The notes under the pieces: model-generated
The model's input: only the letters and a program-made list of their open reading frames with translations
Database searches by the model: none
Told to the model about the DNA's origin: nothing
Shown here: in pieces, positions 3,903 to 44,159 of the stretch
Layout of the letters: every line of letters starts with the position of its first letter
Position numbering within the stretch: position 1 is the stretch's first letter
From: Eukaryota sp. TZLM1-RC
Lineage: Eukaryota; Protista; Metamonada: BaSk clade
Direction: 5' to 3'
DNA: 64,000 nucleotides
NCBI GenBank assembly: GCA_040285825.1
Contig: JAUPSS010000013.1
Location: 248,001-312,000, forward strand
Made by a program: the position numbers and the translations under genes

Positions 3903-4935
3903 ATGGTATCTTCTTTTACTATCATTGTTGCTGACAAGGTTTGAACAAACACATTTTTCTCATCCCAGTACGCGCCCTCTGTTGCTGAAAATTTGAAGCA
4001 AGCTGGTCATAATGTCATTGTTGATCCAAGTCTCAAGGAAACCTCTTTGACTGAAGCCTTATCCCAGCATCAAGCTGACATCCTTATGGTTCGCTCCACC
4101 AAGGTCCAGCAAGAACAACTGGATGCTTCCCAAAATCTCAAGCTCGTTTTGAGAGGTGGTGCGGGCTATGATACCATCAACTGCCAATACGCTAAGGAGA
4201 AGGGAGTTCGTGTTTGCAATACTCCTGGTACCAACTCTGTAGCTGTTGCTGAAGTTGCCATGGGACTCGTCCTTTCTCTCGATCGATTCATCCCCGACAA
4301 CGTTATACAAGCACGTCAAGGAAAGTGGAACAAGGCTCAGTTCTCCAAGGCTAAAGGTTTAAAGGGACAAACCATTGGTCTTGTTGGTTTTGGTAACATT
4401 GGTAAAGAAGTTGCCACTCGTGCCGCTGCTTTTGGAATGAATGTTCTTGTCTGGTCAAGAAGTCTCACTCCTGAACTAGCACAGAAACATGGTGTTGATT
4501 TTGCTGCTTCTCCCATGGAAGTTGCTGAACGAAGTGATATCGTCTCCATCCATTGCGCTAACGCTCCTGAAACGAAGGGTCTTTGTAATGCCGAGTTCTT
4601 CTCCAAGATGAAGGAAGGTGCTTACTTCATCAACACTGCGAGAGCTGCCGTAGTAGTTGAACAAGACTTGATTGATGCCATGAATAACCGAGGAATCCGT
4701 GCTGGAATCGATGTTCCCGCAAACGAACCTTCCACTGGTTCTTGTGACTTTGAATCCGAACTCACTAAGCACCAAAATGCTTATGTTACACGTATGTCTT
4801 ACCTTATCCTTATTTATTTCAGATCACATTGGTGCTTCTACCTCCCAAGCTAGTAATGCAGTTGGTGAATTGGCTTGTAAAGTAGTTGATACCTTTGCCA
4901 GGGAAGGAGAATATATTCACTGTGTCAATGCCTAA
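3903..4935 (+). CDS. D-3-phosphoglycerate dehydrogenase-like D-2-hydroxyacid dehydrogenase without ACT domain; introns 3939-3968 and 4792-4822
   Basis: VRSTKV, NTPGTNSVAVAE, GLVGFGNIG NAD motif, FINTAR. THHIGAST is restored by splicing intron 2. Confidence 0.9.
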
Positions 4936-6545: not shown

Positions 6546-9543
6546 TTGTATTTATTTTTATTCAACAACAAATATGAAATACACAATTAAAACTCCACAT
6601 CCTCAAAACCTGCCTCCCCTACATCAAAACAATTAATCGCTAAAGATTCAGAAAATTTCCCAACAGAAGATAGTGAATCAGAAATTAGTGTTACCATTCC
6701 TTTAAAAATAGAAAATACAATCCTGTTTTGCCAGTAAACACGATTGAAAATTCTTCCAGTTCTTTCCTTTACAACTACAACAAAATCCTCAAGGAAAGCC
6801 ATAGCAGCCTTACCTAGAGATCCAAGCAAAGAAAAAACAAATGGACATAAATTATATTGGGCATGAGAATTTTCATTAACCGAGGAAATGGGTTTCGCAT
6901 ATTTAGCAATTTTATATTTTTCGCCTGCAAGAAGAGGATTATTTACATCCGAGTTAATGAAATGTTCGTTAGAGGAATTACAAGGGTCAATAGACATGGC
7001 GTCCAAAATAGTAAAACTACCATTTAAACCAGGAACAACTAGATCACCTCTAGTCAGACCCATAGAAGCTCTGTTGTAACGCGTACTATCAATATTGGGA
7101 TCATCAAGAATTAATTTTGATAACAGCGGTTCTAAAAAGGAATCTACACGATATGATTTGCACATTACATAAATTTGGTCCCTGACGTTATTATGCACTT
7201 TGCTTCTAAACGTAATGAAATGTTTACAGTTCAAAAGATGAGTAAACAAAAGAGGTTTACCACATTTACAAGTTAAATGATTGGGCAAATTGTTTGGCCA
7301 CAGAAAACAACGAAAACGCATGTTTAGAAGCCATTCATTGTCTTTTAACAAAAGTCCATAAACAGAGGGAACTTGAGTTACTAAAGCAGCAGCAGAACTA
7401 TCACGAATATCCTTTAAAAATTACCGAAAGCGGGATTTTTAGTTTTGGCCAAGCCAAGTCTTACTTCATAATCCAAGCCTTCATATAATTTAACCAGATG
7501 GTGCTGAAGCTTTTTCAAGCAAAAACGTAAATTTGGAAGTGATCGAGTGGGAATTTCTTGAACATTTTGAGGAAAACACTGAATCCAGATATCACTAGGC
7601 AAATTTTCTAATTCAAATTGCAGTTGATTCAAGTAAAATTTGATTCACCATTGATCAGATGAACATCAAAAGGGAACCTTTGGAAAAATTCAAAAACAAA
7701 ATTTTTACCACCTCCCAAAAATGCTGCTTTACACAGAATCGAAGATTTGGTGAATCCAATTCCACCCAAATCTGCTGAACAAAATACATGACTTCGAATT
7801 AAAGATTCATTTACTTCTAATAAAGAAGAAAAAAATTTGACTCGAAGTTTGTTAAAAGATCTGCAAAAATTGAGAGATACCGAAGGGGAGTTGACCTTAA
7901 AATATGAGTGAATTTTCCAGAATAACAAATTTTTAAAATAAAAAAATTTGATGTGTTTCTCAATGTCACATTCAGCAATAAAACTAAGATCCTTGTCAAA
8001 CTTCTCCAATAAATTGTTTAACTGGGAATAAATTTCATCCAAATTGCCAAGCCAACATCCAAGAAACTTAAAAGCTTGTTGGTCATAATTGATAAAAGGA
8101 ATCTGAGCTCCACCAATCATCAAATATTGTTTTTCTCTACCAATCAAGAGACATTTAGATGGGTTCAAAGCTAAACCAATTTCTTTGTATTTCGCCGCAA
8201 TGTCTTCAGAAACCCTAGAAATGCTTTCAAAAGAACCAATAATAGAAATGTCATCCATATAGGCAACAATACGCAAATCAGGGAAATCTTGTTGTGTCAT
8301 TTTAATAATATTATGAATAGCCAAACAAAACAGTAAAGGGCCAAGAGGATCACCTTGTTTCACACCAGAAGAAGATTCAAGGGTAAAGGAGTCAAAAACT
8401 AAGTCTGATTTTTTTCCATAAAATAAATAAAAATATGCAGAAAGTTCAGGAAAATCATGAAGAAGCACATCAAAAATACAATCACGTTTCACAGAATTGA
8501 AAGCATTTTTGAAATCCAAATTGAAAATATATTGATGATGTTGACTATTGAAAAAAACATCTGAAGTCATTGAAGCAACAGAAGCACCTTCAACAGTTTT
8601 TATATTAAATTGGAAAGGCTTCAAATAGTCCCTTGCTTTAGTAGAAATTCTGATAAAAATAAGCGAAGAAAGCAATCTGGTTAATGACTCTCCAATGGCA
8701 ATTGGTCTAACTCCATCAGGTTTGTCACCTTTACCAGGTTTAACTAAAGCAACTAAACGGGCAGCAGTCAATTCAGGCGGAGGAACATAATTTAAACACA
8801 TTAAATTTTGAAAATAGGAAGCAAGATCCTCAACAATTTCAGGAGCATTTTTACAGGCAGTTTTTAACAAATCAAAGGAAATGCCTGAAGGACCAGCAGC
8901 TTTTCCTTTTGGTAATTTAGCAACGGCATTCAATACTTCTTGAGCCTGAAATGGATTTTCGAGCCAATATTGACAAATAGAAGGCTTACTGGGGCAAAAA
9001 TGTTCAGTTGGATGGAGGTATTTCAATTTTTCAACAGTTTCGAGATTGGTATCAGCCAGTTTTCCCGAAAAAATATTTTTTAATCCGCTTCCATATCTAC
9101 CTCTCAAAAACAATTTTCTTGCCTGAAAAGATGAATTAGCTTTTCCCTGTTTTGGTTTGTAATTAATTTTCTTCTTATTTTTTTTGGCAAAGAATTTCCA
9201 AAATCTTGTTATGTTCCATTTGTTTAATTTCAATTGCGAAGAAAAAGAACGCATTTCCATTGACAAAGGAACAGAACTGGCAGGACTCACCTCTACAGGA
9301 ATTTTAACAGGTGTACGAAGAGAATCACTTGTTTGACAGTCATAACAAAACAATAGAGGGCGACCATTAGAAGAATTAGAGAGGAACTTTTTGCAAAAAG
9401 GACAACTATGTTTCAAGACATTATCCGTAGGATCAGGAGCAACAGTTTTTGGTAAATGAGTTTGATCAATATTTAAATCATAATTAACATCATCAGCAGA
9501 AACATTGGGAACAGGAGGAAGATTTAGTTCGGATGGCGTTTGC
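6546..9543 (-). mobile_element. CRE-like non-LTR retrotransposon, family B (ZnF-RT-CCHC-RLE), probably 5'-truncated, 14-bp target site duplication (TSD)
   Basis: RPIAIGE, DFKNAFNSV, GVKQGDPLGPLLF, AYMDD, CKC...HLLNC, RGD...LDAMS...EKYKIAKY. TSD aaacatatctgcaa at 6532-6545 and 9544-9557. Four frameshifts. Confidence 0.93.
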
Positions 9544-10800: not shown

Positions 10801-10872
10801 TCGGTTATAGTATAGTGGTGAGTATCCCCGCCTGTCACGCGGGAGGCCGGGGTTCGATTCCCCGTAACCGAG
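10801..10872 (+). tRNA. tRNA-Asp(GTC)
   Basis: 72 nt; acceptor stem tcggtta/taaccga, discriminator G, anticodon loop ctGTCac, T-loop ttcgatt; T-run downstream. Confidence 0.96.
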
Positions 10873-12537
10873 ATATTTTTTCGTGTAATTTGATAAGAAA
10901 CCATTTCAATAGAAATTAGAACCAAGTCCTTGTTAAATTGAATTGCTAAATCATTGAAATGCGATTGTTCTTATAGTTGGTTGATTAATGCTGATGTGAA
11001 AGCTTGTTTCGCTGTCATGAAGGAGCAGCCACAGAAGTCTTCCATGTTCGAAAACGCTGTTTTCCAGTGTTGTGAAGTTCTTCTTCGATCCAATTCGTTG
11101 ATGTTGTTCACAAATCAATTTGGATCAAGTGTCAAACTATAAAACAAATTTACCTTATGGTTCAGTGGTGAATATTACTTTAGGAACCACATGCAAAAAC
11201 CACTGAATTGGAATTTAACGCTCTAGTGGATGTATGCATTGGATGTTTCGTTTTTGAAAACACTAAATTTCTAGGTATGACTGTAATCGAAGCTGTGAGG
11301 CTTCAGATAAAAGAAAGTGGCGGAAAGAATTATAGGTCAACGACCTGTATGTAATAGAGTTGTTTGTTGTGAGCAGAAAGCAATATGGAATACTTTAAGA
11401 AAATCGGGCACTCATAAAATTGAATAATGTGGCTTGTCTAATGCGATGACTCAGTTCTGGATTTTGTATTTTAAGTGCTTAGTTTCAACCTAATGAGAAT
11501 TATGTTCTGAAGATTTTCCTTAAGAATCGAACCGTTGGCAGTTCGAAAAGTTTTCCTGCTGAGACATCATGAAGCTACTTAAATTTCTTCGATAATTCAT
11601 TGAGCTATTCAATCCCACTTTGATTAGAATAGTGTAAATAATGTTGGCTAAGGCTAAAAATGCCCTTCTTGATTTGGAAAGTATCACGTTTCCTATCACG
11701 TGATCATTAGTTTTAATTCATCCTGTTTTTACTTCCCTATTTTGATATTTATTTTATAGCAATTTGTTCTTTGTTTTATACGACAACTGCAAACCTAATG
11801 AAATGATGAAGACCCTTCACAAAAATGTCAACATATGTATTTTCATTAATGAAAGGTAAGTTATCAAACCAATATCATATCATTTCATGCATTTCAATAC
11901 GCTGAGCAGAAAGCGAAAGCCAATAGTCAATTTGAACCATTGTTGTTCACTATTGCAGCAGAATTTCTAAATAAAATATGGGAACAAACGAGTAAGTACA
12001 ACAGCGTAAATGAAGTTCAGTGGAGAAAGGACACTTAATCACAGTTGTTTAGACGTAAAATGCTAAATATTTACTAATTACTATACTAAAAATAATAATA
12101 ATATGTTATACTGACCAGTAGTAGTCCTTGAAGTGGAAAAGTAGAGGTGTTGAAATTGTGGTAGTACAGTCTAAGAATCCGATCGAAATTCCAAAAAAAA
12201 CTGCAGATTCATTGTAAAATAGAAAATTGAGTACAACATTGTCATTAAACAAGTTTAGTTTATTTATTAGTATATTGAATTAATTGTTGCAGTAACAATA
12301 ATTTAATTTGTATAAAATAGTCACATCCTAAACTATTACTTTTTGTAATATCATCGTTAATTTTGTCCTAGTTAATCAGTTGAACTGAACTAGTTAAACT
12401 AAAGCAGACGCGACCATCCTCTTGCTACCAACAAAGGGTTCTGAATTCGATTAAAAATTTCCCAACATTGACATGTATGAAACTTCCATTAACACAAGTA
12501 GCTGTAGATCACAATTTAAATCATCACTGTTGTGCTT

Positions 12538-15057
12538 ATGTTCAACAAAGACAATAAGTGGTCACCTGTTCTTCTTCTGTATATTCTGACGATTGCAGTT
12601 CATACAGGATTGTCTTATGTCATTTCCCGATGGGTACTATTTGCTGTATTCAGTCAGGTCGCACCTTTTGCACGTGAGTTGTTCTGGGATTCATCATTGC
12701 AACTGATTGTCCTTCTTAGTTATGGAATTTATGCTATACCTCACATTCTTTCGGCCATGATTGTACTAAGATTGACTGTGTTCTATGCAGGTCACACAGC
12801 TTTAATTCTACTGCTTCTAGCGCTCACCCAAACAGTTGTTTTTACAACTCTAGCTTTGTTGTACAGAAGGTGGTTTAGACTTGATTTACGAATTCCAACT
12901 GTTAGAGACGTACTCATTTACCTCTTCGCCATCTTGATTACACCATCATTAATGTTATGTTCATCGATCTACTCTTACTTCAGGTACAGTGCTAACGTTC
13001 TTGTTTTGATAATAGTGGGAGCTGAATTGGGCTTGTTCCTTCCAACATTGCTTGACTGGATGACCCTTGCAATTATCGCGTACGTGCTCCTTGGTCCTGT
13101 TTTTGCGAGCGTTCTGGTGATAATTTTTGATCATCTGTTGGTGAAAACAGCTCTTTGTTTCATGATACCCCAGCACTACCGTCATTGTCATGGTACAATA
13201 AGCTGCTTCATCTGCAATCGTCCTCAACTACCGTTACTCGTTTGGCCTTTACTCTTGGTCAACATGGCATATGTAGGATTGTTGGTTTGGATCTCCGTAA
13301 TTGGACCGGAGTTGAGTTATTTCGTGCTCTTGTTTGTACCTTTCTCATTTTACTTCATCTATCATGGATACTATGCTGCAGTGTTCTGGGGATTGAGTGT
13401 CTTTGTAGGTGTCTTGATATTTGTTGCACTTTTTGTGATTATTCCAACACCGGGTGTATCATTAGTCTTTACCGGTGTCTCTGCAGCTACCATTATACTT
13501 CTATCCGCAATTTTGTCTGATGACATAAAGCGTGAACGTCTGCGTTCAGCAGCATTACTTGAAGCAGCTGTTCAGAAACGAACAGAAGAGCTAGTCTGTG
13601 CGAGAGACGAGCTACAGGAGAGTATATCTGTAAGGAACCAGTTCTTGATTGATATTTACCAGTCCACGAAGGACATTTATGAGGAGACAAAGTCCTCAAT
13701 GGTTGAACTATCCCAGGTACCGTGTTCTCCCCAGGAACAGACCTACGTACGAGATGCAATGACAGCCGCTGGTCAGTTGGAATGGTTCTTGGAGGATCTC
13801 AAACTTGTGACTGAGTTGGAGGACGCTAGTTTGGTTGAAAAGCAGGAACCCGTATGCTTTTACACAGTGTTTGATGTTGTTGCAAGTAGAATATCACATT
13901 GTAACATACATTGTATTCACCTTTATGACCTTTTACCCAATGTACATGTGCCTTTAATAGGCACGAATAAGTATCTATTTGAGAAGATGCTCTTTATACT
14001 TTTGAGGATGTATTTCTCATTCACCTCTGAGAGGGATCTTTCTGTGATGTTGATCAGTTACAGGGAACATTATCTTCATACAACATCACCCTTCGAACGT
14101 CGTGAAACATTGACTCAAGGTAGAATTGTTGTTCCTCATGATGCATCCATTTGTATCCTAATGGAATTGAAAGATTCGCAATTGTTTCATGAAAAGATTG
14201 AAGAGATGCTGGCACTCCATACTGAACAGCAATACTTCTTTGTTTCTTATCTACTCTTACTCAAAGTATGTGAGCTCCTGAACACAGAACTATTCATAAC
14301 AACCACAGGTAACATTGTTTTAAGAGGATTTTATCCAGTTCAAGATATTGGCGACTACTCGTCTCTAGCCAAAACAGTTTCTTCAAAGTTTCCAACAGCC
14401 AAAGTTATCACAAACAATTTTTTGTTGAGAAAACATTTATTGTCAATTCTGGAAACCAGTGGAATAACGGTTGATCATTCCCCTCATTGTCCACCGGTGT
14501 CTCTTGTCATTATTGATGAAGCAAGTGTTGATCCACTCGAGTATGAAGATTTTCCAGATACAGTGCTGGAGACAAACAAGGTTTTGTTTTGTGGATCTGA
14601 CGTACGTTTGAACAAAATTAAGCATCCAATCTATTTGGCAAAACTATTGCATTTTATATCTCAAGATTCACGACCCCTTCTAAATCCTGATATTTATGTT
14701 TTGTATGGGTCGATTGTTCAACGTACTTTGTTATCATTCCTGCTGAGAAAGTACAAAGTAAATGTTTTGTTGAGAAACAATACTGAGGAAATTTGCCAAG
14801 AAATTGTAAACAAGTTTGAAAAGGGTGACAATTTACCTCTTTTCTTTATCTTCGACGACCCTTGTTGCCCATCAGGAACTTCAGCAGAGTCTGTGCGATA
14901 TTTCGCAACATCATTTGATGTAAATCATGCTCCTGTCATTGTTGCAATCGATCCTCTCGCACCCAGCAATAATTTCAATCACTCCATGAAGCAAGTGATG
15001 AATGGTCGAGTGATGGATTCATTACTGATACAGTCACATACCTTTTTTGATAGATAA
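12538..15057 (+). CDS. Multi-TM (MASE1-like) degenerate hybrid histidine-kinase-like protein
   Basis: Many N-terminal TM helices with MASE1-like RLDLRIPTVRDVLIYL; signalling helix AAVQKRTEEL; HisKA-like helices lacking the phosphoacceptor His (NQFLIDIYQSTK); two receiver-like segments. Confidence 0.7.
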   Translation: MFNKDNKWSPVLLLYILTIAVHTGLSYVISRWVLFAVFSQVAPFARELFWDSSLQLIVLLSYGIYAIPHILSAMIVLRLTVFYAGHTALILLLLALTQTVVFTTLALLYRRWFRLDLRIPTVRDVLIYLFAILITPSLMLCSSIYSYFRYSANVLVLIIVGAELGLFLPTLLDWMTLAIIAYVLLGPVFASVLVIIFDHLLVKTALCFMIPQHYRHCHGTISCFICNRPQLPLLVWPLLLVNMAYVGLLVWISVIGPELSYFVLLFVPFSFYFIYHGYYAAVFWGLSVFVGVLIFVALFVIIPTPGVSLVFTGVSAATIILLSAILSDDIKRERLRSAALLEAAVQKRTEELVCARDELQESISVRNQFLIDIYQSTKDIYEETKSSMVELSQVPCSPQEQTYVRDAMTAAGQLEWFLEDLKLVTELEDASLVEKQEPVCFYTVFDVVASRISHCNIHCIHLYDLLPNVHVPLIGTNKYLFEKMLFILLRMYFSFTSERDLSVMLISYREHYLHTTSPFERRETLTQGRIVVPHDASICILMELKDSQLFHEKIEEMLALHTEQQYFFVSYLLLLKVCELLNTELFITTTGNIVLRGFYPVQDIGDYSSLAKTVSSKFPTAKVITNNFLLRKHLLSILETSGITVDHSPHCPPVSLVIIDEASVDPLEYEDFPDTVLETNKVLFCGSDVRLNKIKHPIYLAKLLHFISQDSRPLLNPDIYVLYGSIVQRTLLSFLLRKYKVNVLLRNNTEEICQEIVNKFEKGDNLPLFFIFDDPCCPSGTSAESVRYFATSFDVNHAPVIVAIDPLAPSNNFNHSMKQVMNGRVMDSLLIQSHTFFDR

Positions 15058-23418: not shown

Positions 23419-23593
23419 TCAATTCAATTTGCCATTATTAATAAATTGCCTCGGTTTTTCAATCGAATTAGAGAAGCTTTAGCTAGACAGCAAGCAGATC
23501 AAGATTTTGTAGAGGAAATCTTAGTTCAATGAATTTCGTCCCATTAGTTGAGATTTTATTTTGTCAAGTGTGTAAGTTTAATAAAAGTCAAAG
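23419..23593 (+). mobile_element. Short 3' fragment of CRE-like family C, flanked by a TSD-like repeat
   Basis: IQFAIINKLPRFFNRIREALARQQADQDFVEEILVQ* plus 3' UTR; aagcttgtcct at 23408-23418 and 23594-23604. Confidence 0.8.
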
Positions 23594-23651
23594 AAGCTTG
23601 TCCTATGATTATAGACAAAAACCAAAGCAAAGAGACAAAAAGCAGCCAGCT

Positions 23652-26299
23652 ATCGTATTTATTGAATTTGCACATTTGATTAAATTAAATCATAACTAAT
23701 GGGACGACTATCATTAAACCAAGATTTCCTCTACAAAATCTTGATTTGCTTGCTGTCTAGCTAAAGCTTCTCTAATTCGATTGAAAAACCGCGGTAATCT
23801 ATTAATAATGGCAAATTGAATCCGTGAACGCCATAAAAAAATATCAAATCTTTTCATTGTTTTTTCTTGCACCAATTTTTGGAAGTCATCCAAAAAAGTT
23901 TCTGCTTCAACTGATAATCTTCCATTTATCGAAAATGGGAAAGCAATAAAAACCAGCTGTGTATTTCTATCGACATTTGCATCTTCAATTTCTTTATCAT
24001 ATTTTCTATGTTTTTCTTTTGCTTTAAAATCCAGAGCAGCCACAGGATTAAGTTTTCTTCTGTGAACCAAAGTATCGTTTGCAACATTACATGAGACAAA
24101 GTCAACAATAGCTTCAGAATTATCAATCCAATCACAGTATACATCACCTCTATCATCAGAACCAAAATTATTCAGAGAAAGTGTTTCCTTCAGCAGGGGC
24201 TCTTTGATACACGATATCCTTGTAGTTTGTGCCATATTGAAAACAGTGTCTCTAACAGCATCATGTAATGAAGAAAGATAAGTTATCAATTTAGAGCATG
24301 GCGCAAAGTGAGTTGAGGTGAATTCCAACAAATACATTTTTCTTTTGATAATAATTGGTTAATGGGGATGTTCAAATATAATCTCATTTTTGTTACAAAT
24401 GCTTCATTAGTGGCACACAATCCAAATCTTTGTGGTACAATGGTTACAAAAAGTGAAGAATCTGACGCCTTGTTTTCACAAACACCCTTTTCCAATAACA
24501 ATGAGTGAAGATCTTGATTTAAAACAGCCGAGCTGCAAATATTATTATAAAGATCTTCTTCATACATTCCAGTCAATCTTTTCTGTAATGTTCGAAGAGT
24601 GTACTTCAAATTTAAAACATTTTTTTCTGGAATATTGCCATTGAATGATTGGGGAAAACATCGACCCCATTTTTCTACATCAATTCTTGAAATTTCTTCA
24701 TTTAATGCAAAAACAGTGGAACTTTGGGTTGTCATCAATAAATCTTCCCAATCTGCAAATCTTTCGGAAAACTCAAAGATTGCATTTCTACATCCACCAA
24801 CAAAAGCACACGAGGTAAGAATAGAAGCCTTCGTCCACCCTAAACCACCATAATGTGGACTAAGGTAAGCATGATCTGGAATTTGAAACATTTTACATCC
24901 CAGTAATTGAGACAGAACTTTTGCACGTAACTCATTAAACTTTTGAGCCAAAGGTCTAGTGACGAGAGGATTTGTAGATCGAAATATATAATTAAAATTG
25001 GAACTAAAACACAGTCTTATAATGGTAAATTTGATGTGTTTTTTTATATCTAAATTCATCATTCGGTCAATTTTGTCAGAAATTGAGTTCAACTTTTCAA
25101 ACAATTTTTTGGTAATTTCATCATTATTTCCTAAAAACGAACCCAAATGACGAATAGCATCAATTGAATATAATTTGGCTTGAATTTCAATATCATCAAT
25201 TATTGTGGAAACTGGAGAATTCGATAACAAAACACATTTAAGTAAATTAAGTCGGAGACCAATTTTGGTAAATAATTCTTTAAAACATACAGTTGCTTTT
25301 TTCACAATATTTAAATCACCAATAAGCACAACATCATCCATATATGCAATCATTTTTAGTAAAGGAAACATCTCTTGAATTTGCAGTAGAATAGGATGAA
25401 TGGCCAAACAAAACAAAAGAGGTCCTAACGGATCTCCTTGCTTTACGCCACTTGATGAACTCAAAATGTTGTTACCAAAATGTAAATTAGAATATGTGCA
25501 ATATGTTGATTGAAAATATGGTATCAATTCCGGCATAAATTGCAATAGAGCACCATGGATACTGCGACGACTTAGTGAATTGAAAGCATTACTAAAATCC
25601 AATGACATGCAAACATTGGATTCATTTTGACGAAATAAGACATCAGTAGCAAAAATCGCTGAAGAGACTCCATCTGTAGTATTTATACCATATTGAAAGG
25701 GTAATAAAATCTTCTTAGCTTTTTCATTGAACCTGCTCAAGCAACACGCAGAAAAAATATTGTGTAAGCTCTCAGAGATTGCAATAGGACGAACATCCAT
25801 TTTTGAATTTTTGACAAGTGCAGTCAAACGAGAACTTCTTAATTCTTCTGGGTATTTGCGTTGACCAGATAATATTTGGTTGAAAAATTTAGTCAATAAA
25901 CCAAGGCAATCTTCTGAAGAAATAATCGCGACTTTTACATGATCAATAGTAATACCAGAAAGTCCGGCAGACTTACCACGAGGTCTCTTTTTGATAACCG
26001 AAAAAACTTCTGATGGCATCAATGGATAATTTTCCCAGTATGTGCCGTAAAAATTTTGATCCATTATAGGGTCCTCATAAGGATGAAGTATTTTCAGTTT
26101 ATCTATTGTATTTTCATTGTTCGGTGCTTTAACTCCGGGACTTAAAGCTGACAAAGCCTTGGACCATTTGTTGTCAAAGCATTTGTCTTCAAAAATTTTA
26201 CTTAATTTCTCGGATGACTGATTTCTCGGTGCTATATTAGTTAAATCTTCGGAAATATTAACGAAATTTTGTTCAAAAGGAGGACAAAAAGAACCAACT
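23652..26299 (-). mobile_element. 5'-truncated CRE-like retrotransposon, family C (RT-CCHC-RLE), one frameshift near 24290
   Basis: RPIAISE, DFSNAFNSL, GVKQGDPLGPLLF, AYMDD, RGDVYCD...KAKEKHRKY. Ends defined by the empty site in the duplicated arm (about 28815-28835). Confidence 0.93.
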
Positions 26300-26326
26300 T
26301 GAACTAAACTCAAATCTTACTCATCA

Positions 26327-26956
26327 ATGGATACTTCTATACTCAATTGTGGTATTTGTATTGATATTCCATACGACGCAGTGGAGACTACTTGTTGTTA
26401 CTCTCTTTTTTGTTCTCAATGCCTGGAAAGGTGTACAAATTGTCCTCACTGTCGCCATCCAAATCCTAATGCTTCTCCGTCACATGCTATACGAAGAATT
26501 ATCTCAAATTTCCCAGTAGATTGTGATTGTGGACATCACACAACACGAGGAGAGCTACAACACCATTTTAACTACTGTCCAAATCGTAGAAGCACTTGTC
26601 TGTTCTGTAACTTGGAAATCTCGAATGCTGAGTTTCTCACCCATGTTATGGACGATCATCCACATGACCTCAAAGTCACCTTAATCAACAAGAAACGGGA
26701 GAAAGACAAGTTGAAGGTGATCATGCATAACGATGATGTTACAAGCGTTGACTTTGTTATTACTGTTTGTCAATTGATATTTGGATTTGATCGAACAAAA
26801 GCTCGTAACATAACTATGAAGGTACACAACGATGGAAATGCAGACGTTGGAATTTTTCCCGCAGAGGTTGCCCGAGATAGAGTCGAGATTGCACATAGAA
26901 TGGCAAGAAGTAATGGTTTCCCCTTTAGGTTGACTTTTCAATCAGCTTCTGATTGA
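26327..26956 (+). CDS. RING + TRAF/SIAH-type zinc finger + ClpS fusion protein, copy 1
   Basis: C8/C11/C23-C24/C29/C32/C39/C42 RING-like pattern; CxC..H..C and CxxC..H..H fingers; C-terminal KVIMHNDDVTSVDFV...MKVHNDG...PAEVA...FPF ClpS core. Confidence 0.9.
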   Translation: MDTSILNCGICIDIPYDAVETTCCYSLFCSQCLERCTNCPHCRHPNPNASPSHAIRRIISNFPVDCDCGHHTTRGELQHHFNYCPNRRSTCLFCNLEISNAEFLTHVMDDHPHDLKVTLINKKREKDKLKVIMHNDDVTSVDFVITVCQLIFGFDRTKARNITMKVHNDGNADVGIFPAEVARDRVEIAHRMARSNGFPFRLTFQSASD

Positions 26957-27599
26957 TTATGTCACTTTTGACATTCTTCCAGTCATTAGGGCATGTTTTG
27001 GCACACATCTCTCTCACGATCTTTTTTTATTAAAAACTATATGACAGGAAATACTATGCCAAGTACAATTTGAGTCTGCTCTATTAAGAATCTCTACTGA
27101 TTAGATTTCAATAAATAAACAAAAATTAATGAAATTTTATTCCATATGGAAAATAGAAAAATAAGAAAACTTATAAACAAAAATAATAGCTCTACAACAA
27201 CAAGCAGCGCTTCATAGTATCCTGAAAATATATATTTATCCGATTGATGTGCAGTGGCATTTTCAGTTCACTGATGAGAAACTTTGCTCAAGCAGAGCAA
27301 GAATCAAGAATATGACTTGATTGTGACATAAAATGGTTAGTTTAAGAGAACTTTTATGAACTAAAAAAGCCGAAAACGCTGTCTTAAATTTTTCTTTCAT
27401 CACCATGATTTATAAAATTAAATTCTTTTAAATGGTTCTATATGACGGCTTTTTATCACTGTTTAGGTGATTAAAACGAAAAGACTCTTCATTCACATGT
27501 CCCTTGGAAAATATTGCCAAATACCTGGATCAAATAAGAGATTGCCATAAACTTGAGGAATTGTTGTTACTAAGGCAGAAGAAGTACTGTCACACATAT

Positions 27600-27795
27600 C
27601 TTGTTAAAGATTTGCAAAAGCGGGATTCTTTTTCACGGCCAAGCCAAGTCTAACATTAAAATCCAAGCTTTTAAAAATCTTTGACAATTTTTGCTGAAGC
27701 TTTTTACCAGAACAACTGCAAATTAAAAGGAGATCGGTTTGAAATTTCTTGAATTGGTTAGGAAAAATATTTGGTCTAAATTTGTTGTTGCAATC
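27600..27795 (-). mobile_element. CRE-like family A internal fragment in the inverted-repeat spacer
   Basis: Reverse complement matches family A around KKLQQKLSKIF...VRLGLA...NPAFANL. Confidence 0.75.
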
Positions 27796-28168
27796 TATCT
27801 TTTATTTTTATTGATCTTGCGCACTTAACAAAATAACTGAAAATAAAATAAAATAACTGAAAATGCAACTGCACATCAATCGGATAAATATATATTTTCA
27901 GGATACTATGAAGCGCTGCTTGTTGTTGTAGAGCTATTAATTTTGTTTATAAGTTTTCTTGTTTTTCTATTTTCCATATGGAATAAAATTTCATAAATTT
28001 TTTTATTTATTTATTGAAATCTAATCAGTAGAGATTCTTAATAGAGCAGACTCAAATTGTACTTGGCATAGTATTTCCTGTCATATAGTTTTTAATAAAA
28101 AAAGATCGTGAGAGAGATGTGTGCCAAAACATGCCCTAATGACTGGAAGAATGTCAAAAGTGACATAA

Positions 28169-28798
28169 TCAATCAGAAGCTGATTGAAAAGTCAACCTAA
28201 AGGGGAAACCATTACTTCTTGCCATTCTATGTGCAATCTCGACTCTATCTCGGGCAACCTCTGCGGGAAAAATTCCAACGTCTGCATTTCCATCGTTGTG
28301 TGCCTTCATAGTTATGTTACGAGCTTTTGTTCGATCAAATCCAAATATCAATTGACAAACAGTAATAACAAAGTCAAAGCTTGTAACATCATCGTTATGC
28401 ATGATCACCTTCAACTTGTCTTTCTCCCGTTTCTTGTTGATTAAGGTGACTTTGAGGTCATGTGGATGATCGTCCATAACATGGGTGAGAAACTCAGCAT
28501 TCGAGATTTCCAAGTTACAGAACAGACAAGTGCTTCTACGATTTGGACAGTAGTTAAAATGGTGTTGTAGCTCTCCTCGTGTTGTGTGATGTCCACAATC
28601 ACAATCTACTGGGAAATTTGAGATAATTCTTCGTATAGCATGTGACGGAGAAGCATTAGGATTTGGATGGCGACAGTGAGGACAATTTGTACACCTTTCC
28701 AGGCATTGAGAACAAAAAAGAGAGTAACAACAATTAGTCTCCACTGCGTCGTATGGAATATCAATACAAATACCACAATTGAGTATAGAAGTATCCAT
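28169..28798 (-). CDS. RING + TRAF/SIAH-type zinc finger + ClpS fusion protein, copy 2 (T22N, V141F, V166A vs copy 1)
   Basis: Intact 209-aa inverted paralog of 26327-26956. Confidence 0.9.
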   Translation of the reverse strand: MDTSILNCGICIDIPYDAVETNCCYSLFCSQCLERCTNCPHCRHPNPNASPSHAIRRIISNFPVDCDCGHHTTRGELQHHFNYCPNRRSTCLFCNLEISNAEFLTHVMDDHPHDLKVTLINKKREKDKLKVIMHNDDVTSFDFVITVCQLIFGFDRTKARNITMKAHNDGNADVGIFPAEVARDRVEIAHRMARSNGFPFRLTFQSASD

Positions 28799-28889
28799 TG
28801 ATGAAGAAGATTTGAGTTTAGTTCAAGCTGGCTGCTTTTTGTCTCTTTGCTTTGGTTTTTGTCTATAATCATAGGACAAGCTTCTTTGA

Positions 28890-31530
28890 CTTTTATTAAA
28901 TTTACACACTTGACAAAATAAAATCTCAACTAATGGGACGAAATTCATTGAACCAAGATTTCCTCAACAAAATCTTCATCTGCTTGATGTCTAGCTAAGG
29001 CCGCTGTAATTCGATTGAAAATCCGAGGCAATTTATCAATTATCGCAATTTGAATTCGAGAGCGCAATAAAAAAATATCAAATCTCTTCGTTGTTTAATC
29101 TTCAACCATTTTTTGAAAATCATTCAAAAAAGTTTCTGCTTCTACTGACAGTGTTTCATTCATGGAAAGTGGAGAAGCAAAGAAAACTAGTGGTCTGTTG
29201 CTATCAGCATCTGGCTTTTTCGATATCTTTGTCCTATTTTCTATTTTTGGCCCATTATAGTTTTGTTTAGCTATTCACAAAACTTTAAATATCATTAAGC
29301 AAAAATACCCTTCTATAAAAATAGTTGCTTATATGGATGATATATCCTTGATTGGTTCATTTGATTTACTAGAATTGGTTGCTCAAGAAATTGCCGATTC
29401 ATATGAAAATATTGGGCTTCATCTTAATGCCAGCAAATGCCTTATGATTGGCTCTTCTGCTCAAGACCTCGTGATAAACGATTCTATTGTCCCTTTTACT
29501 AATTATAGTAGTGATGCTTTTAAGTTCCTTGGTTGTTGGTTAGGAAATGTGCCTCAAATTCAGAATGAATTGCAAGTTATTTTGGAAAAAATGAAAATTG
29601 AACTTGATTCAATTTCTTCTTTAGATATAGAAAAGCATATTAAATTTTTCATGCTTAAAATTTGCTACACTGGGAGAATAACCCACATTTTGAGATCTTG
29701 TGCTCCTTCCATAGCATTAGATTTTTGTCGTTCATTCAATTCATTGAGAACAGAATTTTTTGCTGATTTATTGGATGTAGAACCAGGAATGTTGAAAAGT
29801 CACTTATTTCCTTCAGCAAATTTGGGGGGTATTGGATTTACTAAATCTTCAATTTTGTGTCAATCAGCATTCTTGGGTGGTGGCAAAAATTTTATTTATG
29901 AATTTTCTCGTAGATTTCCTGATGATTCTCATCTGTTAGTCCCCAATTGTAGTCCCTATTTGTATGAGTTATCTTGTGAACTTGAAAAATTACCGCCACA
30001 AATTTGGACCAAATGTTTTCCTCAATCAATTCAAGAAATTCCAAACCGACCTCTATTTAATTTACAGTTTTGCTGTAAAAAGCTTCAACAAAAATTGTCA
30101 AAGATTTTTGAAAGCTTGGATTTTGATGTTAGACTTGGCTTGGCCAAGAAAAAGAATCCCGCTTCTGCAAATCTTTTACAAGATATGTGTGACAGTACTT
30201 CTTCTGCCTTAGTAACAACAATTCCACAAGTTTATGGTACTCTCTTATCCGATTCTGCTTGGACTCTGAATATGAGATTTCGTTCCTTTATCTGGCCTGA
30301 TAATTTACCTCATAATTTAATTTAATTTGTAAATGTTGTCGAAAAATTACTATTACTCATTTGTTAAATTGTCAACATTTTATTACTGTTAGAAGCAAGG
30401 TTCATGATGTTGTAAAATACCAGTTATATTGTATGTGTAAGTCTCATAGAAATGAATCCTTTTTGGAACCACTGTTGTCAAATCTGTTTGATGCTGAAAA
30501 TGATTTTCATAAGAATAATAGAGGTGATGTCATATTACCTGGATTAGATGGAAGCTTCATTTTATTGGATGTAATGTCTGTTGATCCTTGTAATGCCTCA
30601 AATGAAAGGCTTGTTAATTCTGAAATTCATAATCCCCTTTCAAATGCTGAAAATTTTAAATTCAAAAAATACAATGAACCTTTGTCCAAATTGGCCAGTC
30701 TACAGCATGCAAAATACAATTTGTATCCATTTGTATTTTCCCTTTTTGGTTCACTTGCACCAACTGCTGTACGTTTTTTGGATGATTTTGAAATGATTGT
30801 AAAGAGAAGAACTGGCAGAAATTTCAACAGATTGTTTTGGCAAAATAGAATTGTGTTTTCTATTTTTAAGGGGATGTTGAAGATGGTTTCTGATGGTTTA
30901 CTTTCTCTTGGATCTCACTATGAGAGAGTTGCATCTAGTGTTTTTGTTTTGGGAGAGATGGATTTTTTAGATGTTGATTTATAGGTTGTGAATACAATTA
31001 AAATTAAAAAAAATTTTCTATTTTTTCCTTTGCTTTAAATTCAAGAGCACTTACGGGATAAACACTCCTGTTTTGAACCAAAGTGTCATTTGCAACATCA
31101 CATGAGACAAAATCAAAATTAACTTCAGTGTTATTAATATTAATCACAGTATATATCACCTCTGTCATCAGAACCAAACTTGTCTAAGCAAAGACTCTTT
31201 GACACATGGAATTCTTGCATTTTTTGCCAATGTGAAAACAGTGTCTCCGACACCATCATGTAATGGAGGGAGATAAGCTATCAAATCAGAAAATTTAAGA
31301 GCATGACGTGAAGTGAGCTGTGATGAATTACAGCAAATACATGTTTCTATTAATAGAGATATGCAGACATAATCTCATTTTTGTTACAAATACTTCATTA
31401 TGGGCACATAGCCCAAACCTTTGTGGCACAAGGGTAGCAAATAGTGTTGTATCTGATGACTTGTTCTCGCACACATCTTTTTCTCATCATAATGAATGAA
31501 GATTTTGGTCTAAAACAGCCGAGCTGTATA
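28890..31530 (-). mobile_element. Decayed CRE-like family C copy (28890-29248 plus 31013-31530) split by a family A insertion
   Basis: RLE coding is continuous across the insertion (...ALEFKAKE..RK | DKDIEK...RPLVF); homologous to 23714-24540. Confidence 0.85.
29249..31012 (+). mobile_element. 5'-truncated CRE-like retrotransposon, family A, 13-bp TSD
   Basis: AYMDD, zinc finger, RLE motifs, short A-tail; TSD attttctattttt at 29236-29248 and 31013-31025; frameshift near 30320. Confidence 0.92.
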
Positions 31531-31773: not shown

Positions 31774-31845
31774 CTCGGTTACGGGGAATCGAACCCCGGC
31801 CTCCCGCGTGACAGGCGGGGATACTCACCACTATACTATAACCGA
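31774..31845 (-). tRNA. tRNA-Asp(GTC), identical to 10801-10872
   Basis: Exact reverse complement of the first copy; T-run downstream. Confidence 0.96.
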
Positions 31846-40745: not shown

Positions 40746-42554
40746 CTAATAATCATAATCATCATCATTGCTATCACTTTCCGAAGTTTCACCACTGTAA
40801 CCTGTATTAATTTCGTTCATTCTTGCTGAATTCAAACACCTTATATTCGAATCAACTTTAAAAATAGCTTCACTTCCATTTGCCTCTATCAGAGCTGAAA
40901 CTTCAATGAGACCATCTGCGGTTACCCTGATTGTTTCATTGATTTTAGCTTGGCCTGCTGGCAATGGTGGGATATTGGAAACAGTGTACTGGCCGACTGA
41001 GTTACAAAATTGACATTCTTTTTGGGAATGATAATCAGCATTGGTTTCACACTCAACGAGGTTCAAAACCACTTGAAACTGGTTGTCTTCTTTGGTTTTG
41101 AATTTTTGGCCAGCTTTGCATGGTAACTCAGTACCTCTGTTTAGTAGAAATTTGACACCGTCTTTATGCCGAATGGCCAAAGAGCGATTTAAAACATCTT
41201 TCAACACCAACTCTTTTACTTCACCTCCCTGGGATGTCAAATGCGCAAAGTAAGCAGCACCCTGTGCAACGGCCTGATCCTTGTTGATAGATTCACATGG
41301 AGCTTTATGGAAAATTTCCTGAATGATTTCATGAATTTTTGGAATTCTGGTCGAGCCTCCAACTAGTAGAATTATGTCAATTTCTTCAGGAGTCAAATTG
41401 ACCAACCCTAATGTAGAATGAATGGTTCTCCTACACCTATCAAATATCTCAGCCGAGCATTCTTCCAACATTTCCCGAGTGATGGTCACACGCACGGGGT
41501 TATCTTCAGACAAGAACACCCTTTGAGAAACAAAGTCTACATGGTTTAATTCGGATAACTGATGCTTCACCTCTACCAATTCCCTTTTCAGCTTTAGCCT
41601 ATTCTGTTTTTTCTTTTTTGTTACTTTTTCCTGATTTAGGCTTAAATTATTTAAAATTGGTGCTTCGACTCTATCAAAACACTCAATTACATTATAAACA
41701 TCATCCCCATGCTCCTCGATACATTCTCCAATGACCATATCTACCAATGCGTTATCAATATCCATTCCTCCAGTTCTAGCATCACCACCAACTGCCAGCA
41801 CTTTAACAACAGGGCATGACGTGTCATCATCATGGTACAGATGTGCAATTGTACAATCAAGCGTCCCTCCGCCAAGGTCAAATACCAATATTTTCTTATT
41901 ATTCACGCTTGGATGAATAAATTTATAAGAAAGTATAGCAGCTGTTGGCTCATTAACTAGTCTCACAGACTGGATTCCTGCCAGACTTGCTGCATTTCTT
42001 GTATTACGACGCTGAGTTTCGTTGAAGTTGTAGGGCACTGTAATGACGGCGCCGCTTACCTTGGCATTGAACCTTACTTCAGCAGTGTGTTTCAGCTTCT
42101 TTAAAACTTCGGCACTAATCTGCTCAGGACAAAAGGTAGTGGGAGTGGGGTTAGTGTTGGGGTTGGGAAGATTGACTTGGACAAGGGGAGAGTCCTGGTA
42201 TGGGTCCTTGACAATCATGAATGGCCATCGTTTGAGGTCTTCTTGCACAGAACTATCACTATATTTCTTTCCAATGATGCGTTTAATCTCATACACAGTG
42301 TTTGCCGGGTCTTGAGCAAGCTGGTTTTCAGCAGATTCACCAACCAAGGTGGAAAAAGTAGGAGACTTCTTACTGGCCTTCCAAGATACAATAGAGGGTG
42401 TAAGATGCTTGCCTGTACTAGGGTCTTGGGCCACTTGTAGTTCATCAGGGAGTTGAGCAGTGTGGGTGGCTGATTGATTAAAACTATGGTATCGGGAAGC
42501 ACATGAGTAAGTGGTGCCAAGATCAATACCAATGGTTATATCTTCATTGTCCAT
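40746..42554 (-). CDS. Divergent Hsp70-family protein lacking the helical lid and EEVD
   Basis: GIDLGTTYS, LVNEPTAA, VFDLGGGTLD, LLVGGSTRIPKI, linker LVLKDV and SBD-beta, then an early acidic C-terminus. Confidence 0.88.
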   Translation of the reverse strand: MDNEDITIGIDLGTTYSCASRYHSFNQSATHTAQLPDELQVAQDPSTGKHLTPSIVSWKASKKSPTFSTLVGESAENQLAQDPANTVYEIKRIIGKKYSDSSVQEDLKRWPFMIVKDPYQDSPLVQVNLPNPNTNPTPTTFCPEQISAEVLKKLKHTAEVRFNAKVSGAVITVPYNFNETQRRNTRNAASLAGIQSVRLVNEPTAAILSYKFIHPSVNNKKILVFDLGGGTLDCTIAHLYHDDDTSCPVVKVLAVGGDARTGGMDIDNALVDMVIGECIEEHGDDVYNVIECFDRVEAPILNNLSLNQEKVTKKKKQNRLKLKRELVEVKHQLSELNHVDFVSQRVFLSEDNPVRVTITREMLEECSAEIFDRCRRTIHSTLGLVNLTPEEIDIILLVGGSTRIPKIHEIIQEIFHKAPCESINKDQAVAQGAAYFAHLTSQGGEVKELVLKDVLNRSLAIRHKDGVKFLLNRGTELPCKAGQKFKTKEDNQFQVVLNLVECETNADYHSQKECQFCNSVGQYTVSNIPPLPAGQAKINETIRVTADGLIEVSALIEANGSEAIFKVDSNIRCLNSARMNEINTGYSGETSESDSNDDDYDY

Positions 42555-42559
42555 TCTTG

Positions 42560-43070
42560 CTTCACTAAGGTAGTTTAAAATTTTACTATTGAATGGACAT
42601 GATTCAATTTTCAATAATTTTGTTAACCACTTACTTCCTTTCCTAGATCATTATGATGTTTACTGCGATTTACCATATCACACAAGTCATTATGTAAAGT
42701 TTCCTTTGGTTGTGACTGAGTTAAGACCTGTTATAGTTCTTATCTCCAACAATACAAAACCAAGAAGGAAGTCAGTCTTGATTTATGAATAAACATCACC
42801 GATAGAGCAATATTCAGGTAGTTGATTTGCATTAAAAAGTAAGAGTCTTGATCGATGTTGTCAAATTTAGCTTTTTTGGTTGAATCATTTCCTTTTGAAG
42901 TTTCAACAAGAAAAATAGTTGCCAATAGCTGCATTTCATTGATTAAAAGATTACTCATTCCAAAGTCTAAAATGAGAACCTTCTGTGAAGAATTAGCATT
43001 TCAAGCTCTCGATTGCTGGCACCGCAGCTTTTCTGCTAGGAATCTCGTATATTGTTATCTGATGGAGTAG
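42560..43070 (+). mobile_element. RLE relic of a different non-LTR clade (HERO/NeSL-like)
   Basis: HDSI...VYCDLP...TELRPVIVLI...VLIYE*TSP...FPFEVSTRKIVANS, with stops and frameshifts. Confidence 0.6.
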
Positions 43071-43236
43071 AATCATAGAAACACACCATGGGTGGTGTTA
43101 ATAGTGTTGCATGCTCAGTATTTTACATTGATTGTTAATAGGAAAAAATTGTTTTCTTTTAATAATAAATGTCCTGTATATATGGACTTGACACGTGTTC
43201 CTTGATTGGAACATGTATATCGTGTAAAACAACACG

Positions 43237-43538
43237 ATATTATATTATATTATATTATATTATATTATATTATATTATATTATATTATATTATATTATAT
43301 TATATTATATTATATTATATTATATTATATTATATTATATTATATTATATTATATTATATTATATTATATTATATTATATTATATTATATTATATTATAT
43401 TATATTATATTATATTATATTATATTATATTATATTATATTATATTATATTATATTATATTATATTATATTATATTATATTATATTATATTATATTATAT
43501 TATATTATATTATATTATATTATATTATATTATATTAT
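43237..43538. repeat. Perfect (ATATT)60 microsatellite
   Basis: 300 nt of uninterrupted pentamer, 43237-43536. Confidence 0.98.
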
Positions 43539-44159
43539 TTAATTTTACCTCCATAGAAAATCCAATTACCGCTCATTGCAAACACACTCATACTGATCAT
43601 CACTTTTTCAGACAGAAATTGTGTCAGATATTGAGTAGAGACACCACATAAACTCAAAATTCTTGATAACAAATTGAATAACTTTTGTGTCATAAATGTT
43701 TGGAAAAAATACCATTTTGTTTCTTTTTCTGCATAACTTGTTTTTTTTGCAGATTTAAAACAGCCTTGGTCATCACAAAATGAGTTTTGATTGTTACCTT
43801 TGATGGTTTTTGATGAAAAAAGTCTCATAAATCTGGACGAATATTTTCTAAACCTGGTATGATTGTTTGGTTTTTATTCAATCTTTTGGAAAAAGTCCTC
43901 ATAACTAGACTGAGAAAATGATCATCAAAATTAGATACAGCTCTTATTGATGAAAGCATGTGGTCGTTCAGTTCACAATTTATGTGAAAAACAGAGCTTC
44001 TTGTAATTTTGAAGAGAACTTACATAAGTATTCATTCTCAAATATGATGGAGTTAATAATGGTTTAGAATGGCAGTTCTAATGGTGAATTTGAAATCGCT
44101 TATTGCAAGTCTCTTCGTTTCGAAATAAACTAGTGGCAACTGATGAAAATAAAAGAGGT

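Follow-up and report, generated by a model that had tools for sequence, protein, structure and literature searches.

The N-domain of UBR1 is accepted as a homologue of ClpS (PMC4447728, PMC1779556), and in the reviews of this field UBR1/2 are the only ClpS-bearing ligases and PRT1 is the plant alternative. The fusion in UBR1 is ancient, and its N-domain is too diverged to reveal how a protease adaptor joined a ligase. In E. coli ClpS, the M40 gatekeeper keeps out beta-branched residues (10.1101/2024.06.12.598358) and V65 is a proven specificity site (10.1101/158246). For delivery, ClpA pulls the free N-terminal extension of ClpS, and the junction usually bears a proline (PMC9663308). Here, we describe a gene in which a RING and two zinc fingers precede a ClpS domain, and which looks like a recent independent replay of the UBR1 event, with a ClpS that is still bacterial and a size suited to direct biochemistry. 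The logic of such a protein is already known from UBR1, and what appears to be new is its architecture and independent origin. Neither a description of the fusion nor a paper with both ClpS and a metamonad was found in the literature searched, most subscription papers being outside its scope, and ClpS is unmentioned in the genome paper of the host.

Domain layout and conservation in a second species

The organism deposited as Eukaryota sp. TZLM1-RC is Skoliomonas litria (PMC11603281), a bacterivorous, free-living anaerobic metamonad in which no mitochondrion-related organelle proteins were confidently identified and whose 31.9 Mb genome, 55% of it repetitive, was assembled from short and long reads (PMC11316075). 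The window analysed here is a stretch of 64,000 nucleotides, with genes typical of eukaryotes across it. The interval 26327–28798 contains two copies of the fusion gene, copy 1 (P0002; T22, V141 and V166) at 26327–26956 on the forward strand and copy 2 (P0001; N22, F141 and A166) at 28169–28798 on the reverse strand. Each copy is a single exon with one uninterrupted frame of 209 codons, and the fusion is therefore not a gene-model join. Both copies are called genes in the deposited assembly (GCA_040285825.1), where the exact protein was found on a 545-kb contig.

All 209 residues of the protein could be assigned, and Pfam detected only ClpS at residues 125–203 (E 7e-23, well over the cut-off) and a weak zf-C3HC4_3 match at residues 7–45, which was under the cut-off. 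A UBR box (zf-UBR), tandem RINGs and a ZZ domain were absent by Pfam, and a DWNN domain and zinc knuckle were absent by Pfam and in the full-length model. The predicted full-length structure had two confident halves, a TRAF6-like N-terminus and a ClpS fold, with a disordered linker at residues 116–124 (pTM 0.48). Its residues 90–125 are less reliable, as alignment A3 misplaces one helix of the homologues there. The flexible linker (26663–26707 on the forward strand in copy 1, about residues 113–127) takes the place of the N-terminal extension of ClpS. Because the RING begins at residue 8, there is no space for a targeting peptide.

A homologue search covering 1.84 billion cluster representatives, of which the best 150 matches were inspected, returned a single other full-length match (P0003, 217 aa, 39% identity, E 1.5e-38); the rest matched one half only. 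A copy in GEM-RC could have escaped this search by falling inside the 50% cluster or by being absent from the collection. P0003 is KAL0212250.1 of Skoliomonas sp. RCL (hereafter RCL), the deepest-branching skoliomonad, and lies on an 869-kb contig. The gene is single-copy at this locus and is flanked by SCAI and tRNA-Asp, with housekeeping genes around. The SCAI gene, the upstream neighbour of the RCL fusion, is found in the window at 56946–58718 (forward strand), 28 kb from the fusion, and a tRNA-Asp(GTC) gene, which in RCL lies 155 nt past the fusion gene, is found at 31774–31845 (reverse strand), 3 kb from it. Since both markers are near the fusion in both species, the RCL and S. litria genes are likely to be orthologues, although the synteny is only partial. 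The 39% identity of the fusions is not unusually low, because identity between the same species is only 32% for SCAI. Thus, the fusion frame is continuous in two independently assembled genomes, amid eukaryotic genes.

All 16 zinc ligands and all five residues that hold the free amino group were identical between RCL and S. litria. Identity elsewhere was 32% and fell to 0% in the linker, and such agreement at 21 of 21 functional positions on a 32% background is not chance. Because these ligands and amino-group residues are identical against that background, we conclude that both halves are under purifying selection. No further protein with both domains was found in a local check of relatives, in viral contigs or by word-indexed homologue searches, the last being of low sensitivity and limited to 0.55–1.75x the query length. 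Metagenome contigs gave RING-only matches and phage records ClpS-only matches, and the ESM Atlas, which was covered for clusters of at least 50 only, gave no further fusion. One Atlas cluster of 162-aa proteins (53 members) aligned over 145 residues spanning 1–200 of the model with a TM of 0.55. It has no ClpS Pfam match, few of its members have taxa (eukaryote or giant virus), and it probably represents a RING-ZnF with a short unrelated tail.

The RING-zinc finger module and the ClpS pocket

The RING lies at 26348–26452 on the forward strand in copy 1 and at 28673–28777 on the reverse strand in copy 2, and its ligands C8, C11, C23, C24, C29, C32, C39 and C42 have RBBP6-like spacing. It is followed by a C2HC zinc finger of TRAF type (C66, C68, H80, C84; 26522–26578, forward, and 28547–28603, reverse) and by a C2H2 finger (C91, C94, H106, H111; 26597–26659, forward, and 28466–28528, reverse). 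The 16 ligands were conserved in this order in an alignment of 59 relatives. The RING is thus of the vicinal-Cys C4C4 type and not C3HC4; the second of the adjacent cysteines C23-C24 is present in 58 of the 59 family members and position 25 is variable. Tyr25, a His-to-Tyr change, was considered as a RING-breaking lesion and rejected, as the family relies on the vicinal cysteines and position 25 varies freely.

The AlphaFold model of residues 1–120 (pLDDT 94.6) had its best structural match in TRAF6-Ubc13~Ub (Foldseek E 9e-7; Z 10.5) and also matched TRAF5, RNF125, LNX1/2, RAG1 and SIAH1 structures; TRAF6, RNF125 and LNX1/2, among its best matches, are active E3s. The RING, helix and zinc-finger module of TRAF/SIAH/RNF125-type ligases is present, and a C-terminal MATH domain, SIAH substrate-binding domain or UIM is absent, the C-terminus being ClpS. 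At the usual E2-contact positions I10, P40 and R43 are present, with R43 directly after the last cysteine; R43 is shared by 49 of the 59 family members, and RCL has Ala in place of P40. It could be argued that the RING-ZnF half is an inactive scaffold or dimerisation unit and that the protein is an N-terminus-binding adaptor for another ligase. In favour of this are the atypical H41, where RINGs usually carry a hydrophobic residue, the missing aromatic residue of the central helix, the Pfam RING score under the cut-off and the RAG1 dimerisation domain among the structural matches. However, I10, P40 and R43 agree with those of active RINGs and are kept throughout the family, and we regard an inactive RING as very unlikely.

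The RING-ZnF-ZnF family is wide among protists (P0004–P0152, including ciliate, metagenome and S. litria members) and matches the first 115 residues of the fusion at 31–43% identity, every zinc ligand being retained. The partner of the module in this family is a Cys-rich domain, SPRY or a Ras-like domain, or there is none, and ClpS was found in none of the 91 other members. The S. litria paralogues P0007 (L003, 5001–5820) and P0152 join the same module to a repeated Cys-rich C-terminal domain, which is unnamed, has no Pfam match and is common in the protist family. In the RING tree, the fusions and these paralogues fell in one unstarred group of 18. This protist family is likely to be the source of the module in the fusion, with which the tree is compatible without proving it.

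The ClpS core spans residues 128–206 (26708–26944, forward, in copy 1; 28181–28417, reverse, in copy 2). E. coli ClpS aligns with it without gaps (query 127–207 against 26–106, offset 101), and N34, D35, D36, T38 and H66 are intact as N135, D136, D137, T139 and H167. The modelled half superposes on solved, peptide-bound ClpS at 0.7–1.4 Å. Its bacterial relatives show 38–46% identity, come from many phyla and are sited before clpA-like genes. A ClpS profile matched E. coli ClpS at 1e-16, apicoplast ClpS at 7e-5 and plastid ClpS at 3e-3, with no Ubr1 chain among its matches up to E 10. These results showed that the ClpS half is of bacterial type. Together with the N-terminal position and C4C4 type of the RING and the lack of a UBR box, the profile scores make it very unlikely, on this indirect evidence, that the protein is a shrunken descendant of UBR1. 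Bacterial fusions of a Clp N-domain to ClpS (P0063, P0075, P0088) and other ClpS fusions (P0129, P0133, P0137) were also seen; ClpS is often fused in bacteria as well.

The M40 gatekeeper position corresponds to codon 141 (26747–26749, forward, in copy 1; 28376–28378 in copy 2), which is Val in copy 1 and Phe in copy 2 and RCL, and the V65 pocket wall corresponds to codon 166 (26822–26824, forward, in copy 1; 28301–28303 in copy 2), which is Val in copy 1, Ala in copy 2 and Ile in RCL. With the gatekeeper altered in all three fusions, their specificity cannot be read from that of E. coli ClpS. All bacterial relatives that have Phe or Tyr at M40 carry a small side chain at M62 (12 of 12, counted after dereplication and not corrected for kinship), and the fusions carry Thr or Ala at M62. 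Because Phe at M40 accompanies Thr or Ala at M62, the pocket appears to be compensated rather than decayed; this is inferred in the absence of binding data.

On the docking face, the equivalent of E82 is Arg (R183) in both S. litria copies and Leu in RCL, E79 is kept in all three fusions, and K84 corresponds to Arg, Arg and Tyr (RCL). Of 149 bacterial relatives, 139 have the junction proline, which is missing from all three fusions, and no clpA, ClpC or ClpP gene lies beside the fusion gene at either species' locus. The ClpS tail and junction proline used for ClpA delivery are lost, and the replacement of the free extension by folded RING-ZnF domains, along with the missing proline, is evidence against such delivery. 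An alternative is that N-termini are not what ClpS reads here, the domain having been repurposed to hold one fixed partner or an internal peptide, or docking on a host AAA+ chaperone (Hsp104/ClpB-like) by way of its N-domain. This is favoured by the non-Met gatekeeper and the retained E79 in all three proteins and by the ClpS domains of the two species being only about 38–41% identical. However, the five amino-group-binding residues show no variation, which is unexpected for an unused site, K84 is lost in RCL and the proline in all, and this explanation is unlikely.

The preliminary description of this stretch had proposed a 209-aa protein with a RING-like domain, TRAF/SIAH-type zinc fingers and a full ClpS, and this held in Pfam, alignment and structure matches, with the RING now refined to RBBP6-like C4C4. 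Its ungapped ClpS alignment, offset, five binding residues and Arg at E82 held, as did the bacterial type of the ClpS, which rests on profile scores, the lack of a targeting peptide and the substitution of ClpS for the usual substrate domain. The architecture, which it did not know from described proteins, proved to be rare. The RCL orthologue strengthens the architecture, the bacterial type, the domain substitution and the rarity alike. Its use of E82-to-Arg as a supporting argument failed, since this position is variable, with Glu in just 39 and Arg in 10 of 152 bacterial relatives, and the change carries little weight.

Origin of the fusion and the inverted duplication

The ClpS trees (92 columns) left the donor unresolved. 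The three skoliomonad ClpS domains were apart in a 155-row tree and together, with support 50, in a 69-row tree, and their single origin is neither shown nor rejected. P0031, the row closest to them, is an ordinary gene with a clpA-like ORF after it. We infer that a bacterial clpS was acquired laterally and then fused to a host RING gene, an inference with good support in general terms whose details are unresolved, and that the fusion would have arisen in or before the skoliomonad common ancestor. Elsewhere in the window, a bacterial-looking D-2-hydroxyacid/phosphoglycerate dehydrogenase-like gene (3993–4853, forward) may represent a further lateral transfer.

The two copies lie in an inverted duplication, of which the left arm consists of an upstream part (23421–23651) and a gene-bearing part (26300–27268, forward) and the right arm spans 27855–29056 (reverse), with a 586-nt spacer (27269–27854) containing a retrotransposon fragment. 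The left arm is split by a 5'-truncated non-LTR retrotransposon (RVT_1; 23652–26299, reverse) from a family of more than 100 copies, which entered 27 nt ahead of the copy 1 ATG and later than the duplication. Silencing of copy 1 by this insertion is possible; the DNA upstream of copy 2 is uninterrupted. No perfect target-site duplication was found for the element. Its 5' junction (26277–26299) resembles the target DNA (23634–23651) over about 18 nt with 3–4 differences, and the same element end adjoins different DNA in another sample, which makes microhomology the likelier cause of this likeness than a target-site duplication.

The copies differ at three coding bases, all non-synonymous (T22N, V141F, V166A), and two of these fall in the specificity pocket. 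Three non-synonymous changes by themselves are unremarkable (P 0.49), and the probability of two of three falling in the pocket is 0.002–0.009 in a post hoc test. Because RCL carries N, F and I at positions 22, 141 and 166, each S. litria copy seems to have altered one pocket residue. The coding stretch with the next 162 nt differed at 3 of 792 positions, and the distal 3' arm showed five differences and one gap in 150, as expected from selection or gene conversion. It is possible that the recent duplication is dividing pocket specificity between the copies, a hypothesis for which there are no binding data.

The gene could also lack function and stem from transposon capture, from contamination or from misassembly. 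Retrotransposon pieces abound at the S. litria locus, which is an inverted repeat, and the fusion gene is lacking in DNA sequencing runs X1–X3, in which only retrotransposons are represented. However, these runs have fixed differences from the window and are likely to come from another isolate and to be uninformative on the fusion gene. The RCL gene is single-copy amid housekeeping genes with neighbours in common, the arms are told apart by substitutions and by an insertion of 2.65 kb, which argues against a fold-back artefact, and the GC and GC3 of both halves fit host genes. An artefact is very unlikely.

At least three non-LTR families occur in the window. Short ORFs following reverse transcriptase ORFs (23714–24337, reverse; 30361–30984, forward; 6587–7351, reverse) have motifs that look restriction-like endonuclease-like by eye and have no Pfam hit. 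Two tRNA-Asp(GTC) genes (10801–10872, forward, and 31774–31845, reverse) with flanks about 95% alike suggest a further small inverted duplication. The window also holds an 841-aa membrane protein (12532–15057, reverse), by eye a bacterial-type sensor, after which come degenerate regions resembling a histidine kinase and a receiver, a divergent Hsp70-like gene with insertions (40746–42614, reverse) and a long AT-only tandem array of a 5-nt unit (43216–43545), which is a source of spurious ORFs.

Proposed function and comparison with known systems

The architecture, zinc ligands, amino-group site, linker, tail loss and conservation in two species are shown by sequence and predicted structure. 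By a modest margin, we favour the reading that the protein is a minimal single-chain type-2 N-recognin E3, cytosolic or nuclear and convergent with UBR1; its binding and ligase activity are inferred, and its expression is assumed. In this reading, the ClpS pocket would bind an unblocked N-terminal Phe, Leu, Tyr or Trp, and perhaps also Met, Ile or Val, that cleavage has laid bare, and the flexible linker would carry the bound substrate to RING-bound E2~ubiquitin. The RING, probably dimeric, would pass ubiquitin from the E2 to a lysine near the substrate N-terminus, and the resulting chain would direct the substrate to the proteasome. Such logic is workable in eukaryotes, because UBR1 and PRT1 do likewise, and ClpA delivery is unlikely to apply in the absence of an identifiable organelle and of a free extension. 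Counting against an N-recognin E3 are H41, Ala at P40 in RCL and the altered gatekeeper in all three proteins. The direct coupling of N-degron recognition to ubiquitination, as the preliminary description had inferred, remains a candidate.

It is also possible, though much less likely, that the RING E3 is active and the ClpS pocket works but that the bound protein is not sent to the proteasome. The pocket may sense cleaved N-termini, or free peptides or dipeptides from digested bacterial prey, and switch on signalling of K63 type, trafficking or the ubiquitination of some other protein, by analogy with the regulation of yeast Ubr1/Ubr11 by dipeptides. TRAF6, the closest fold, makes non-degradative K63 chains, and the best structural match was TRAF6 bound to Ubc13. 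Peptide sensing is further favoured by the fission-yeast ClpS/N-domain chiefly governing peptide uptake and by the bacterivory of S. litria. Against this, 209 residues include no second substrate-binding domain for allosteric control, and TRAF trimerisation or a MATH domain is missing.

If the N-recognin reading is true, the protein would add a third way of making a type-2 N-recognin to those of UBR1 and PRT1, and would show lateral transfer contributing to the ubiquitin system of a lineage whose mitochondrion is vanishing. It would also be a naturally compact scaffold on which tools for N-terminus-directed degradation could be built. The pair of copies in S. litria offers a ready test of the influence of M40 and V65 on specificity. 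A bolder version would be that skoliomonads rebuilt a type-2 N-degron pathway by a second independent ClpS-RING fusion replacing a lost UBR1 N-domain, that this is the smallest known N-recognin E3, and that the S. litria copies already differ in the first residue recognised. Taken jointly, we lean against these claims; if they were true, the adaptor-to-ligase step and its diversification could both be studied in a 209-aa protein.

Among ligases with the same zinc module, TRAF6, RNF125-RNF114, SIAH and LNX arrange RING, linker helix and zinc fingers identically, and the fusion has ClpS where they carry MATH, a SIAH substrate domain, UIM or PDZ. The RBBP6/Mpe1 RING has the same C-x2-C-x11-C-C-x4-C-x2-C spacing and, among PDB sequences, is the one that the N-terminal half matches best, whereas the fusion has no DWNN domain or zinc knuckle and a shorter second loop. 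The protist RING-ZnF-ZnF family has the module in common with the fusion and differs from it in what follows, which is ClpS in none of the 91 others. Bacterial ClpS (E. coli, Caulobacter, Bacteroidota, Bacillota) shares the fold, the ungapped alignment, N34/D35/D36/T38/H66 and about 40–46% identity, but in the fusion it lies behind a RING, has Phe or Val at M40, and is without a free extension, junction proline or adjacent clpA. Plant PRT1 is likewise a small stand-alone type-2 N-recognin with an N-terminal RING and a C-terminal recognition domain (PMC12370974), but has tandem RINGs and a ZZ domain and no ClpS. UBR1/UBR2 (yeast Ubr1, fission yeast Ubr11) similarly combine a ClpS-like type-2 site with Asn-Asp-Asp and a RING in one chain (PMC11668491, PMC4447728). 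However, they are of about 200 kDa compared with 209 aa, have the UBR box that the fusion lacks, and carry the RING C-terminal to the N-domain, whereas that of the fusion is at residues 8–42, is C4C4 and has zinc fingers next. With a ClpS near bacterial ClpS that matches no Ubr1 chain, the fusion is thus an analogue of UBR1/2 and not an orthologue.
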